Assembly: GCA_002269645.1 (NCBI GenBank)
Contig: NIVC01002563.1
Span: forward strand, 3,341 to 67,340
Source: Macrostomum lignano
Lineage: Eukaryota
DNA length: 64,000 nt
Reading direction: 5' to 3'
Positions 27,262 to 35,860 of this stretch are shown piece by piece (positions within the stretch are counted from its first letter, which is position 1; each line of letters opens with the position of its first letter). The notes under the pieces were generated by a model. It made no database searches. It saw only the letters and a program-made list of their open reading frames with translations, and was not told where the DNA came from. Position numbers and translations under genes: made by a program.

Positions 27262-30200
27262 TCATCGCGAGAGCAGCGGCTCAATGAGATCGCAGCCTGA
27301 GACTGTGCAGCAAGCCATGGCTTTTATTGGAGCGCGCAGAGTGCCGCGGCACAATTCCCAGGTAGTCATGCCCGGCTTCCATCGTTGGATCGCCTGGCTC
27401 ATCAACCGGTTCATTGGCACATGTACGCTGATGCCGGCCCTCGCGTCGCCGCCGAACACGTAGATGTACTCATCTGCCACCAGTCTGATGACTGTGGCGC
27501 TGGGGCAGGAGCAGGGGCTGAGTAGAGGCACCGACTCCGTCCAGGTGCCCTCGTAGAGATTGTAGCAGTGCACTTGGTTCTTGAAATTGCCAAACTCTCT
27601 GTTACCAGCGATTGCGTACAGACAGTCTCCGAGCGCCACCAGCTGCGAAGAAAAATGACTATCTATGTATCTATCTATCTATCTATCTATGTATCTATCT
27701 ATCTATCTATCTATCTATCTATCTATCTATGTATGTATGTATCTATCTATCTATCTATCTATCTATCTATCTATCTATCTATCTATCTATCTATCTATCT
27801 ATCTATCTATCTATGTATCTATCTATCTATCTATCTATCTATCTATCTATCTATCTATCTATCTATCTATGTATCTATCTATCTATCTATCTATGTATCT
27901 ATCTACCTATCTATCTATGTATCTATCTATGTATCTATGTATCTATCTATGTATCTATCTATCTATGTATCTATCTATCTATCTATCTATCTATCTATCT
28001 ATCTATCTATCCATCTATCTATCTATCTATCTATCTACCTATCTATCTATCTATCTATCTATCTATCTATCTATCTATCTATCTATCTATCTATGTATCT
28101 ATCTATCTATCTATCTATGTATCTATCTATCTATCTATCTATGTATCTATCTATCTATCTATCTATCTATCTATCTATGTATGTATCTATCTATCTATCT
28201 ATCTATGTATGTATCTATCTATCTATCTATCTATGTATGTATCTATCTATCTATCTATCTATGTATCTGTCTACCTATCTATCTATGTATCTATCTATGT
28301 ATCTATCTACCTATCTATCTATGTATCTATCTATGTATCTATCTATCTATCTATCTATCTATCTATCTATCTATCTATCTATCTATCTATCTATCTATCT
28401 ATCTATCTATCTATCTATCTATCTATCTATCTATCTATCTATCTATCTATCTATCTATCTATCTATCTATCTATCTATGTATCTATCTATCTATCTATCT
28501 ACCTATCTATCTATCTATCTATCTATCTATCTATCTATTTATCTATCTATCTATCTATCTATCTATCTATCTATCTATCTATGTATCTATCTATCTATCT
28601 ATGTATCTATCTATCTATGTATCTATCTATCTATCTATCTATCTATCTATCTATCTATCTATCTATCTATCTATCTATCTACCTATCTATCTATCTATCT
28701 ATCTATCTATCTATCTACCTATCTATCTATGTATCTATCTATGTATCTATCTATCTATGTATCTATCTATCTATCTATGTATCTATCTATCTATGTATCT
28801 ATCTATCTATCTATCTATCTATCTATCTATCTATCTATCTATCTATCTATCTATCTATGTATCTATCTATCTATGTATCTATCTATCTATCTATCTATCT
28901 ATCTATCTATCTATCTATCTATCTATCTATCTATCTATCTATCTATCTATCTATCTATTTATCTATCTATCTATCTATCTATCTATCTATCTATCTTTCC
29001 TACGAGTATTAAATTCAGTAGCGGAGACTTACCGCCAAACCGGCCGATCTCATTGGCAGAGTTGCAGTGAGCAGAGTCCACTGGTTTTGCTTCGGGTCGA
29101 AGCGTTCCATGCTGTCCCGATCAACACCGCCGCAGACGTACACCAGCCCGCCAAGGCTGGCTGCCCCGGCGCCGGTTCTGGTCTGCAGCATAAAGTTGAC
29201 AAAGCGCCAACTGTTGCTGGCCGAGTCGTATTGCTCAACGATATTGCCACCGGTGTGATTCCACCCAGGCGACGAGCCGCCCATCACGTAGATGCTGTTG
29301 TCGCACACGCAGCCGCAGGCGCTGAATCGCGGCGTCGTCATCGGGCAAGCCGCACGCCAGATTCGGAGTCGCAAATCGAAAACGAGCACGTCGTTGGTCG
29401 CCTCAGCATTGATATGATATTCGCTTTGGAGCACCAGGCCGCCTATCAAATACACGCTATTGTTGAGTGCTACACAAACGGCATTACTCGTTCGGGAGTT
29501 CAAAGCCGGTGAGAAATTCTCGTGAGCGATAGTCTCAGACATCACCGGATCGAAAATCTGCACGGCCTTGGTGCTGCAGTTTCTGTTTCTCTCGTGCAGT
29601 AGCAAGCCGCCGCACAGGAAGGCGACCTGATGCGGAAGCCGGCTCCGTTGCCTCTCTCTGCTGTCTGCAGTTCTGTCTTTCCCGAAGTATGTACTCAGTA
29701 TGGACTGCCACTCTGCTGTTTGGGCCAGATGGTGAGCGGACATCTCCTCCAGCTGAGTGTCAGTTATCATGAAGTGTCTCATTCGGCGAACCAGGTCACA
29801 GAAGTACTTGCTACGGTCGAGCTGCTCCGTCTCGATCCACCTGCAAATGACATCGAAGATGACGATCTCGGCTGGCACGTTCAGGTACTTGCTGTCAATC
29901 AGCTCGCACAGCTGTTCACCCGAGCACAGCTTAACAAACTGCGGCTGTTCGGTTGCAGCGACAAAGTGCTCCAGAATGAAATCCTTAGCGAAATCGTACA
30001 AAAGCTTGCAGGTGCACTCAGGATCAACAGCTGTAGTCATCACCATCCAGCAGTTATAGGGACTGAGCTTCTTGATCGCAGTGCTCACGATTGCGTCAAT
30101 CAGGAAGGGTATCTCGAAGTGCTTCGCCAAACTGAGGCGTCTCTTGAGTAGGACGGCGTCCTGCATGAGACTCCCAAGGAACTGCTCATTCATGCTGTCA

Positions 30201-30493
30201 TCAGCAGCGTTGGTTTCTGTTGGCACGCGCTCGCTGTCTCGGTGCTCATCTATGTAGTGAAGGTAGGCCATCAGGTTGCTGAAGTCCAGCGGGTCGGAAT
30301 AGGTCACGGCAGTCATGGCAGGCTGGGCAGCGCGTATTGCAGAGGCGAACAGCTTGTAGAAATAGCGAGAGTAGCGAGCCAGGACTTTGCTGTTTACCCT
30401 GAAAGCCTTCTGCGAGTTCAACACGATGGTCCAATCGGCCGAGAAGAACTCCGTATCGAGCCACACGTGCATTGGAAGCGTGACGAACTCCAT
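27262..30493 (-). CDS. Kelch gene A: KLHL10-like BTB-BACK-6xKelch protein; exons 30493-29033 and 27642-27262
   Basis: ADWTIVL...F.V...VLA..S.YF (BTB); LNVPAEIVIFDVICRWIE (BACK); VYLIGG, IYVMGG, VYVCGG, LYAIAG, IYVFGG blades. Phase-0 intron GCG|GTAAGT (29032) ... TTCGCAG|CTG (27643). Confidence 0.9.
27658..28996. repeat. (TATC/TATG)n microsatellite, 1.3 kb, filling the Kelch A intron
   Basis: Direct reading; explains the IYLS ORFs. Confidence 0.98.
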
Positions 30494-33488: not shown

Positions 33489-35695
33489 CTAATGATTCAA
33501 AAGGGGCTCGATATAGTCGCACCCAGAGATAGTGCAGCAGCCTAGGAAGCAGAGATCACTGACAAACGTACCTGGACTCGTACAACTGGCAGGTTTACAC
33601 AAAGTCCAGGATTCTTGGCTGGGATTCCAGCGTTGAACAGACAATTGCGCTTCTTTTTGACTCAGTCCTCCAAAAGTCTCAGCTTTACCACCAAACACGT
33701 ATATATAATCATTCAACACTGTTGCGCTATGATACATGCGCTTGCCGAGCAGTGGAGCCGTCTTAGACCAACTCTGCTCCTCTGCGTTGTAGCAATACAC
33801 CTCTTTAGTTCCGATCGATTTTCGATGCTTCCCTCCCCCGATTGCGTATAGACAGTTGTCAAATGCCACGAGCTGAAAATAAACATTGGAAATAGTATGA
33901 CATTTATTGCACGATATGTTTTTAAGTGAATGTTTTCGGGCAAACAAACAAATGTTGTTGTTTTTTCAGCTTAAATTTACGAACTACAGCAGTTTTTTGT
34001 GGGCATTAACATGCAATCAACATGTACAGGTAGAGGTACATGTAGGCGCGTTCATCATTCTTTCATATTTTCGACTCCAATAGTTTTGTACTACAAGCTT
34101 TCAAGTAGCTACATTGCGTTTCTCTGCTCTCCCCCGGCTTATGTCGTCTGATTTTAACAGTTCAATGCTTAAAACAACAATTTAGCCAATTAAATGACAT
34201 GATACTATTGGCATTAGCAACTAGAACTCACAGCAAATCCAACAAGTTCGACTGGCAGAGTTGCAGTCAGCAGAGTCCACTGGTCATTCTGACAGTCGTA
34301 TCGCTCCATGGATGAGTGCCAGGCTCCCATGCACACATAAACCATGCCGTTTAGACTGGCAGCGCTGGCTCCAACCCGAGTTACCAACATATTCTGCCGC
34401 GGCCGCCAGAGGCCAGTAGCTGGGTTATACTGCTCAACAATGCCTAGGGACGAGCATCTGAACTTAAAGAACTTACTGAATTCCTTAGTGCCGCCCATCA
34501 CGTAGATCAAGCCGTCGCACACACAGCCGCAGGCTTGGGTACGGGAATTTGATAGCGGGGTGCCCGGACGCCAGATGCGAAGTCGCAAATCAAAAATGTG
34601 AACTTCTCGGGACGTTTTAAAACAATCTTCGTCCTTACAAGTTACGCCACCAATAACATACACGAGGTTGTCTAGATGCAGACAGACAGCCTCTATGGTA
34701 CGGAAGTTGGTAGCCGGCGAGAAATTACTGTGAACAACCATCTCAGACAGTATCGGGTTAAACACTTGTACAATTTGTTCACGTGAAACAAAATTATATG
34801 GGACACTTCCACAGCAGAGGAACGCAGCTTGGCGAGGAAGCCGGCTCCGTTGCCTCTCTCTGCTGTCTGCAGTTCTGTCTTTCCCGAAGTACGTACTCAG
34901 TATGGACTCCCACTCTGCTGCTTTGGCCAGATGGTGAGCGGACATCTCCTGCAGCTGAGCGTCAGTTATCATGAAGTGTCTCATTCGGCGAACCAGGTCA
35001 CAGAAGTACTTGCTACGGTCGAGCTGCTCCGTCTCGATCCACCGGCAAATGACATCGAAGATGACGATCTCGGCTGGCACGTTCAGGTACTTGCTGTCAA
35101 TCAGCTCGCACAGCTGTTCACCCGAGCACAGCTTAACAAACTGCGGCTGTTCGGTTGCAGCGACAAAGTGCTCCAGAATGAAATCCTTAGCGAAATCGTA
35201 CAAAAGCTTGCAGGTGCACTCAGGATCAACAGCTGTAGTCATCACCATCCAGCAGTTATAGGGACTGAGCTTCTTGATCGCAGTGCTCACGATTGCGTCA
35301 ATCAGGAAGGGTATCTCGAAGTGCTTCGCCAAGCTGAGTCGTCTCTTGAGTAGGTCGGCGTCCTGCATAAGATTCCCAAGGAACTGCTCATTCATTCTGT
35401 CATCAGCAGCATCAGTTTCTGTTGGCACGCGCTCGCTGTCTCGGTGCTCATCTATGTAGTGAAGGTAGGCCATCAGGTTTCTGAATTCCAGCGGGTCGGA
35501 ATAGGTCACGGCAGTCATGGCAGGCTGGGCAGCGCGTATTGCAGAGGCGAACAGCTTGTAGAAATAGCGAGAGTAGCGAGCCAGGACTTTTCTGTTTACT
35601 CTGAAAGCCTTCTGCGAGTTCAACACGATGGTCCAATCGGCCGAGAAGAAGTCCGTATCGAGCCACACGTGCATTGGAAGCGTGACGAACTCCAT
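33489..35695 (-). CDS. Kelch gene B: KLHL10-like BTB-BACK-6xKelch protein; exons 35695-34232 and 33872-33489
   Basis: Paralogue of A. Phase-0 intron GCT|GTGAGT (34231) ... TTTTCAG|CTC (33873) at the same codon position as in A; ends CCTISGCDYIEPLLNH*. Confidence 0.9.
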
Positions 35696-35860
35696 ACTCC
35701 GCTTAGTTTACGCTCGTAGTAGTGAGAATGGACTCGAATTTTCGTTCGGTTAGTCAATTTAGACTTATTCGAATTGTCTGTAACCTAAGAATGCTAATGT
35801 ACTGAGCGACCTCACTGCTCTTTATCTTATGTGAGTGCCTTTTCAACTTCGTGCCTAAAC

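Follow-up and report, generated by a model that had tools for sequence, protein, structure and literature searches.

A homogenised BTB-BACK module in two tandem KLHL10-like genes of Macrostomum lignano and its probable origin by gene conversion

Three tandem BTB-BACK-Kelch genes and their shared block

The 64-kb stretch of Macrostomum lignano DNA analysed here (contig NIVC01002563.1, hereafter the window) carries three intact BTB-BACK-Kelch genes, which we name A, B and C and which lie head-to-tail in tandem, all on the minus strand. Counterparts of all three, A', B' and C', are found at a second locus (L001). A and B encode nearly identical BTB-BACK modules followed by strongly diverged Kelch propellers, and the best explanation, to which we assign a probability of about 0.8, is an interlocus gene conversion of the BTB-BACK part between old tandem duplicates around the time of a genome duplication. 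The gene models are as follows.

Gene A: exons 30493..29033 + 27642..27262, minus strand; 613 amino acids (aa).
Gene A exon 1: 29033..30493, minus strand; codons 1-487, encoding BTB, BACK and Kelch blades I to IV/V; open reading frame (ORF) with a GTAAGT donor past codon 487; Pfam BTB, BACK and Kelch.
Gene A intron: 27643..29032, minus strand; nearly all a 1.3-kb tetranucleotide (CTAT/GATA-type) microsatellite, 27659-28996.
Gene A exon 2: 27262..27642, minus strand; last Kelch blades, C-terminal CCTVSGCDLIEPLL motif and stop; acceptor TTCTTCGCAG followed by CTG, phase 0, position shared with B and C.
Gene B: exons 35695..34232 + 33872..33489, minus strand; 615 aa.
Gene B exon 1: 34232..35695, minus strand; ORF and splice-site evidence.
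Gene B exon 2: 33489..33872, minus strand; acceptor TTATTTTCAG followed by CTC, phase 0; supported by an annotated protein.
Gene C: exons 43781-43512, 42670-41886, 41379-40908 and 40483-40124 (span 40124..43781), minus strand; 628 aa; tblastn, splice sites, Pfam BTB, BACK and Kelch.

A and B each have a single phase-0 GT..AG intron, at the same codon; the last intron of C shares this position, and C has two further introns. That last intron of C contains a 27-bp repeat in 8.5 copies (40547-40775), while the homologous intron of B has neither this repeat nor a microsatellite of the type seen in A. The full B protein is identical (100%) to GenBank PAA56878.1 (BOX15_Mlig006357g1). For A, residues 1-394 match PAA56877.1 and the junction of exons 1 and 2 is crossed by UniRef A0A1I8I754, which corresponds to A residues 421-613. 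In the GenBank model of A (PAA56877.1, 404 aa), exon 1 is spliced from a cryptic GT near codon 394 (~29310) to a short exon (26275-26298) 1 kb past the stop of A, so that the final blades of the propeller are missing; a similar error affects several UniRef models of B and B', where splicing enters exon 2 in another frame. No protein is annotated for C, C' or A'. A, B and B' are probably transcribed, because their GenBank models derive from RNA-seq-based annotation. A search of the Macrostomum literature and of supplements of M. lignano papers returned no mention of these gene identifiers or of kelch genes, and no expression data by tissue.

The part shared by A and B is delimited by the following coordinates.

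Homogenised block, A copy: 29633..30497, minus strand; from -4 to codon 287, BTB-BACK; 22/861 differences from the B copy, synonymous divergence (dS) 0.05.
Homogenised block, B copy: 34835..35699, minus strand; GC content at third codon positions (GC3) 0.68, versus 0.51 in B's own Kelch part.
A-B-identical tract of 288 nucleotides (nt), A copy: 29843..30130, minus strand; codons 122-217, covering the end of BTB, the 3-box and the first BACK helices.
A-B-identical tract of 288 nt, B copy: 35045..35332, minus strand; also identical in A', with 2 substitutions in B'.

Over the block, 30493-29633 in A compared with 35695-34835 in B, 22 of the 861 nt and 13 of the 287 aa differ. These counts, the tract of 288 bp with zero differences (29843-30130 = 35045-35332) and the two edges had been given in an earlier note made from the sequence by eye, and recomputation returned the same values. 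At the 5' edge, A-B identity begins 4 nt ahead of the start codon (GAGT before the ATG) and the flank is unalignable from -5. At the 3' edge, in a four-sequence alignment, identity collapses past codon 287 (residues RSRLP) in the middle of an uninterrupted exon: the remainder of exon 1 differs at 249 of 588 aligned nt (Fisher P = 2e-86 against the block), and neither reading frame is interrupted where the block meets Kelch. With the Nei-Gojobori (NG86) method, the block has a dS of 0.05 and a nonsynonymous divergence (dN) of 0.019. In the Kelch part, where a dS as low as that of BTB would have refuted the earlier note, the proportion of synonymous differences (pS) is 0.73, corresponding to a saturated dS of about 2.6, with a dN of 0.50. 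A blastn comparison of A with B returned no similarity outside -4..+882, the flanks and introns being without a match, as the earlier note had described them. Because the flanks and introns share no similarity, the block is a patch rather than the product of a crossover. With non-homology on either side of it and its downstream end within one exon, this patch bears out the proposal that BTB-BACK was homogenised by gene conversion.

The second locus as replicate and clock

The second locus, NIVC01000001.1:2179319-2201526, extends over 22 kb, is collinear with the window (C'-B'-A') and is 93-97% identical to it. B' is annotated there as PAA94864.1, which shares a 90% cluster with B. M. lignano DV1 has been described as carrying three homeologous subgenomes with about 2% single-nucleotide polymorphism (SNP) divergence (PMC10733133), and L001 is for this reason most likely a homeolog; the alternative, that it is a divergent haplotype, we consider the less likely of the two.

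L001 has identical block edges; A' and B' differ at 18/860 nt within the block, compared with about 43% over the Kelch part. The two loci thus provide four copies of the block, for which the pairwise differences are 10 (A-A'), 17 (A-B'), 18 (A'-B'), 20 (A'-B), 22 (A-B) and 29 (B-B'). Private sites number 35 in all, namely 15 in B, 12 in B', 4 in A and 4 in A', one of the A' sites being a 1-nt deletion. Shared patterns are few: one site groups A with A' against B with B', two group A with B' against A' with B, none groups A with B against A' with B', and at block nt 168 three different bases occur among the four copies. These site patterns describe a star tree. Homeolog dS in block and Kelch is 0.022 and 0.107 for A, 0.0625 and 0.032 for B, and 0.054 and 0.063 for C, so that the paralogue dS of the block, 0.04-0.05, falls within the homeolog range of 0.02-0.11.

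Separate neighbour-joining (NJ) trees of the two domains, as the earlier note had proposed, disagree. The Kelch tree is ((A,A'),(B,B')) with long branches and bootstrap values of 99 for the A pair and 100 for the grouping, while in the BTB-BACK tree the four copies form an unresolved polytomy. The saturated synonymous sites and this Kelch topology (99-100% bootstrap) agree with the earlier view of A and B as old duplicates. The star tree, the lack of any site uniting A with B against A' with B', and the equality of paralogue and homeolog dS together place the last homogenisation at or just before the separation of the two loci, that is, the genome duplication; on these site patterns, later conversion within either locus is undetectable. 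The earlier claim that conversion has been recurrent is not upheld by them, since A-A' (10 differences) are closer to each other than A-B (22) and A'-B' (18) are. At codon 191 of A' (L001 ~20863), inside the otherwise invariant core, a 1-nt deletion lies in a GGG run; it represents either a real frameshift, A' being then a pseudogene, or a homopolymer error.

The two loci differ in the mobile elements that adjoin the genes. In the window, one such element lies 165 bp upstream of B's ATG and bounds any A-B or homeolog similarity upstream of B.

THAP element: 35860..37476, strand not assigned; 1.6 kb, with 95-nt inverted repeats (97%) and a THAP-domain ORF at 37064-37300 (minus strand; Pfam).

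This element is absent from L001 and was therefore gained in the window, or lost at L001, after the loci split. Conversely, L001 contains a stretch of ~5 kb (14843-19964) without a counterpart in the window, which ends about 300 bp upstream of A' and in which an open BEL/Pao retrotransposon ORF of 1602 aa is found (15178-19986; DUF1759, RVT_1, Peptidase_A17). Elsewhere in the window, retroelement remnants comprise an integrase ORF (Integrase_H2C2 + rve) at 8854-10299 (minus strand) and an RNase H fragment at 38280-38990 (plus strand). A 10.9-kb satellite array at 14428-25284 consists of about 418 copies of a 26-bp unit (ATATTGATTTTGGCACTCGAGGAATT) with 93% matches, a GC content of about 0.31 and strong skews towards G over C and T over A. 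Dense short-period tandem arrays (periods of 4-39 bp) are found at 239-734, 2026-6529, 7110-7918, 11174-11601, 12415-13674, 25509-25862, 26534-27226 and 46088-47359; they include a 30-bp unit in 23 copies, which starts 36 bp past the stop of gene A, and a 10-bp unit in 126 copies with extreme C and T skew. On the plus strand, window ~48300-60100 holds a large multi-exon gene of extracellular-matrix type with seven laminin-EGF repeats, several FN3 domains, LamG and galaxin-like repeats.

How the block arose

In the reading that we favour, A and B would be old duplicates of the KLHL10 lineage, alongside C, and a non-allelic conversion would have copied about 865-870 bp between them over a distance of 5.2 kb. 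The tract would run from 4 nt ahead of the start codon to the linker between BACK and Kelch, so that the entire BTB-BACK module was replaced and the promoter, propeller, intron and 3' flank were left unaffected. The last such event would fall at or just before the recent M. lignano genome duplication, with the four copies diverging independently afterwards. The outcome would be a pair of adaptors that have the dimerisation and presumed cullin-docking module essentially in common and differ in their propellers for substrate.

A direction can also be proposed. GC3 is 0.70 (A) and 0.68 (B) in the block, 0.71 in the Kelch part of A and 0.72-0.75 in C, versus 0.51 in the Kelch part of B. Private changes in the block number 27 in B/B' versus 8 in A/A' (P = 0.002), and 19 of the 22 polarisable ones in B/B' are GC to AT (P = 0.0009). 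The GC3 contrast and this bias point to A-type sequence as the donor and B as the acceptor. They suggest that a GC3-rich A-type block was pasted into B and is drifting to B's composition, the B copy now decaying towards its lower GC3. The mutational spectrum in the B lineage is odd for so short a stretch: 10 of the ~27 private changes are C to A on the coding strand (B 34835-35695; B' L001 10001-10861), and several of them convert AGC (Ser) into AGA (Arg).

Three accounts do without any exchange of the kind proposed, and we consider each improbable, though not equally so. That purifying selection on BTB-BACK is merely far stronger than on the propeller has next to no chance of being correct. 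The core of the block does encode the best-conserved helices, with model confidence > 90, but synonymous sites are homogenised as well (dS 0.05 versus about 2.6), the same module has diverged from C to a dS of about 1.4 and 36% aa identity, and dN/dS among the four block copies, 0.4, is unremarkable; the synonymous-site contrast led us to reject selection as the cause of the whole block. An assembly or polishing artefact, by which the block or at least its 288-nt core would stem from contig chimerism or from cross-talk between short reads or RNA-seq reads during polishing, is highly improbable. The Mlig_3_7 assembly was indeed polished with Pilon using Illumina and RNA-seq reads, and it holds about 180-312 Mb of near-identical duplicated sequence. 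However, the matching block and its edges occur on two different contigs, which makes an assembly chimera, raised in the earlier note as a danger to its reading, unlikely and argues strongly against it. The block copies also retain 10-29 private differences each, both frames are open over the junction, and Pilon would be unable to turn 55%-identical into 97%-identical sequence, to which the reads would not map. UniRef entries from another annotation reproduce B over the junction (546 aa identical) and B' including its private residues. The older assembly was built on the same PacBio data, however, which Mlig_3_7 reused, so the check is not fully independent, and we downgraded the entries beginning A0A1I8 accordingly. 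A non-homologous chimera, in which a recent partial duplication by template switching or transposon-mediated transduction put the 5' part of one gene before the other propeller, is very unlikely too. The sharp edges, the mere 4 nt of similarity upstream of the ATG, and the mobile elements adjoining both genes (THAP upstream of B; BEL/Pao upstream of A' in L001) would be expected from it, but the replacement is exactly collinear, in frame and located at corresponding positions in genes that share their architecture and the place of their intron; neither edge has a duplication scar, a target-site duplication or extra sequence; and the mobile elements differ between homeologs, that is, they arrived later.

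The alternative that deserves most attention is long-term concerted evolution, the model of the earlier note, in which BTB-BACK has been converted repeatedly since the duplication, selection has confined conversion to the module, and the propellers have diversified. We regard it as possible but doubtful. The ends of the tract coincide with those of the module (ATG-4 and the BACK/Kelch linker), conversion between old duplicates mechanistically requires sustained homology, the block has diverged unevenly around a 288-nt core that hardly varies among the four copies, the 3' edges of A and A' differ, synonymous identity in the Kelch part shows weak clustering (runs test P = 0.04) at codons ~372-406 and 471-480, and B's B-C loops have accumulated 11 nonsynonymous and no synonymous changes between homeologs. 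Set against this are the site patterns of the four copies (none uniting A with B against A' with B', and 10 A-A' versus 22 A-B differences), which give no detectable conversion within a locus since the homeolog split at a dS of about 0.05. In addition, the block of B retains an A-like GC3 (0.68 versus 0.51) and is losing GC, as expected of a recent arrival; dN/dS over the whole Kelch part is < 1; and, among the proteins searched, only two genes carry the block. As to older tracts inside the Kelch part, identical residues use the same codon at a frequency of 0.47 between A and B, versus 0.39-0.42 against C, and the clustering is marginal (P = 0.04-0.06); we do not count such tracts as evidence.

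Several observations nevertheless weigh against the reading that we favour. In a single conversion, divergence at the level of the Kelch part (55% nt identity) would have removed the homology that recombination requires, a need which favours repeated events or an originally better-conserved BTB-BACK. Differences along the block are unevenly spread, at 3.9%, 0% and 3.8% (P = 0.002); the 288-nt run between A and B exceeds what 22 uniformly placed differences would yield (simulation P = 0.0024), and a window of 288 nt with <=2 variable sites across four copies has P = 0.001. From the rest of the block, 6.8 synonymous and 11.5 nonsynonymous changes would be expected in this core, and one of each is observed (P = 0.009 for the synonymous ones), while C and C' show normal divergence in the homologous stretch (5.5 synonymous, 4.5 nonsynonymous). 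Purifying selection is insufficient as the sole cause of the core, given the synonymous deficit and the ordinary behaviour of C-C' there. One event before the duplication does not explain the near-invariance of the core in all four copies; this near-invariance could stem from post-duplication exchange among the four copies, from a constraint other than that on the protein, or from cross-talk during polishing. At its 3' edge the block is ragged, reading CCG CAT (P-H) in A, C and C' and CCT CGC (P-R) in A', B and B', so that A is separated from A', B and B' by three changes within four nt, exactly at the boundary. B-lineage copies have three times as many private changes as A-lineage copies, Pilon polishing with short reads and RNA-seq could affect SNP patterns at this fine scale, and the second locus may be a divergent haplotype instead of a homeolog. 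Among these points, signs of more than one event are confined to the near-invariant core and the ragged 3' edge.

Both block copies also contain an antisense ORF of 173/174 aa (29630-30151 and 34829-35353, plus strand) that covers the 288-nt tract. It probably arises as a side effect of the GC3-rich coding sequence; apart from it, no further feature of the tract could limit synonymous change.

Family identity, propellers and comparison with known systems

The encoded proteins have the architecture of Kelch-like adaptors. BTB/POZ is recognised by Pfam PF00651 at E = 1e-8 to 2.5e-7, above the curated cut-off, with profile positions 11-73 of 110 covered; an AlphaFold model of B (pLDDT 84.8, pTM 0.79) shows a helical BTB-BACK and a six-blade propeller, and in its BTB the strands and helices are present, with a disordered acidic insert at residues ~84-98. 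BACK (PF07707, E = 2.7e-15, residues 160-251) matches the BACK sequences of KLHL3 and KBTBD2. The propeller (Kelch_1, E = 1e-33) is modelled with 24 strands in six blades, blade I being closed by the C-terminal strand. Foldseek gave a full-length match to KBTBD2 and a TM score of 0.9 to the KEAP1 Kelch domain.

Protein searches with B, C and the Kelch domain of A as queries covered 5.8 billion proteins. The best named matches of C are fish KLHL10 (E = 8e-69), and the best match of B outside Macrostomum is an Echinococcus 'Kelch-like protein 10'. This BTB-BACK was found only in A, B and their homeologous or duplicate copies; the A/B entries recovered are PAA56878.1, PAA94864.1, PAA56877.1 and four UniRef fragments, all from M. 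lignano, with no A/B match from other Macrostomum species. The 'repertoire' envisaged in the earlier note is not borne out by these searches, which return two genes per subgenome rather than a family. In NJ trees with limited sampling, A/B, C and Echinococcus KLHL10 form a clade (76-90% bootstrap), and in the same limited sampling a link to vertebrate KLHL10 appears at 55% in the Kelch tree and is absent from the BTB-BACK tree. Kelch identity to Echinococcus KLHL10 is 47% for C, 35% for A and 31% for B, and identity to C is 36% for A and 33% for B; on the basis of these values and of the A-B identity given below, the conserved, KLHL10-like member of the trio would be C, with A and B as old, more rapidly evolving side branches.

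In Drosophila and mouse, spermatid differentiation requires KLHL10, an adaptor of Cul3 (PMC1976628), and docking of Cul3 through BTB/3-box/BACK is established for KLHL3, KLHL11 and SPOP (PMC3616122). The KLHL3 mutant E85A has no measurable Cul3 binding left (PMC3616122). In A and B, the phi-x-E motif of KLHL3 (M83-S84-E85) aligns with I53-R54-A55 (T55 in B'), in an alignment that is weak (2 bits), so that its glutamate would not be conserved; the 3-box region aligns and sits within the invariant core. By homology, Cul3 binding by A and B is plausible. A, B and C resemble KLHL10 in their BTB, BACK and six-blade Kelch architecture. Unlike it, A and B evolve fast, their propellers being 31-35% identical to that of the cestode protein versus 47% for C, and they have the acidic disordered BTB insert and, apparently, the substituted glutamate described above; B has degenerate GG and W motifs.

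The propellers of A and B are 48.6% identical in aa, within the range of roughly 40-50% estimated earlier. Mapped on the B model, A-B identity is 69.6% in strands, 45.5% in D-A loops, 37.5% in C-D loops and 19.5% in B-C loops; the last, which follow the GG doublets, also contain 17 of the 28 A-B gap columns. It is thus in the B-C loops of the binding face that the propellers have diverged furthest, and the earlier description of substitutions and indels as concentrated after the GG motifs is accurate. A gradient of divergence from strands to loops is, however, also shown by any old propeller pair. The comparison of homeologs gives the following values, with B-C loop changes as nonsynonymous:synonymous (N:S).

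A-A': Kelch dN/dS 0.23; B-C loop N:S 4:4 (ratio 0.31).
B-B': Kelch dN/dS 0.66; B-C loop N:S 11:0.
C-C': Kelch dN/dS 0.13; B-C loop N:S 1:8.

All homeolog dN/dS values are < 1. The 11N:0S of B's B-C loops has P = 0.06 against neutrality and a Fisher P of 7e-5 against the 1N:8S of C. These loops would be either unconstrained or positively selected, and relaxed constraint fits equally well. Of the 'diversifying' or 'hypervariable' propellers proposed earlier, these data support at most apparently neutral or positive evolution in the B-C loops of B, the dN/dS of the Kelch domains of A, B and C as a whole giving no support to that description. An extended scenario, in which BTB-BACK is kept identical for function (for example for A-B heterodimers or a common cullin), the B loops are positively selected in sperm or reproductive conflict, and the core is exchanged among all four copies, including between homeologous chromosomes, seems unlikely to us. 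Its setting is suggested by the occurrence of KLHL10-lineage genes in a hermaphrodite used for the study of sexual conflict.

The locus probably offers a clean natural case of module-exact gene conversion, the whole dimerisation and presumed cullin-docking module being swapped between proteins whose propellers are 50% different. The M. lignano genome duplication supplies an internal clock and an independent replicate, by which the event can be dated and later conversion excluded. For flatworms, the genes represent a small lineage-specific KLHL10-like expansion, with one conserved member (C) beside two fast-evolving ones (A and B), and all three are candidates for functions in spermatogenesis in an established RNA interference model.

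The system is a new example of a well-known process, not a new type of system. Interlocus gene conversion restricted to a segment of tandem duplicates is familiar from the gamma-globins, the red and green opsins and RHD/RHCE. As in those pairs, a near-identical patch, synonymous sites included, is set in paralogues that have otherwise diverged and lie a few kb from each other, sharp edges bound a tract of < 1 kb, and segment trees are discordant; unlike them, the M. lignano patch comprises a whole protein module and is datable by the homeologous locus of a neopolyploid. Ubiquitin-ligase families with a conserved adaptor and a variable binder, such as nematode and plant MATH-BTB and F-box proteins, likewise combine a conserved cullin-docking part with a diverging substrate binder whose changes lie on the binding face. 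Those families number tens to hundreds of genes, with positive selection statistically demonstrated, whereas A and B amount to two genes per subgenome, and in A and B, unlike in those families, the constancy of the adaptor part would arise by a copying event, not by constraint.

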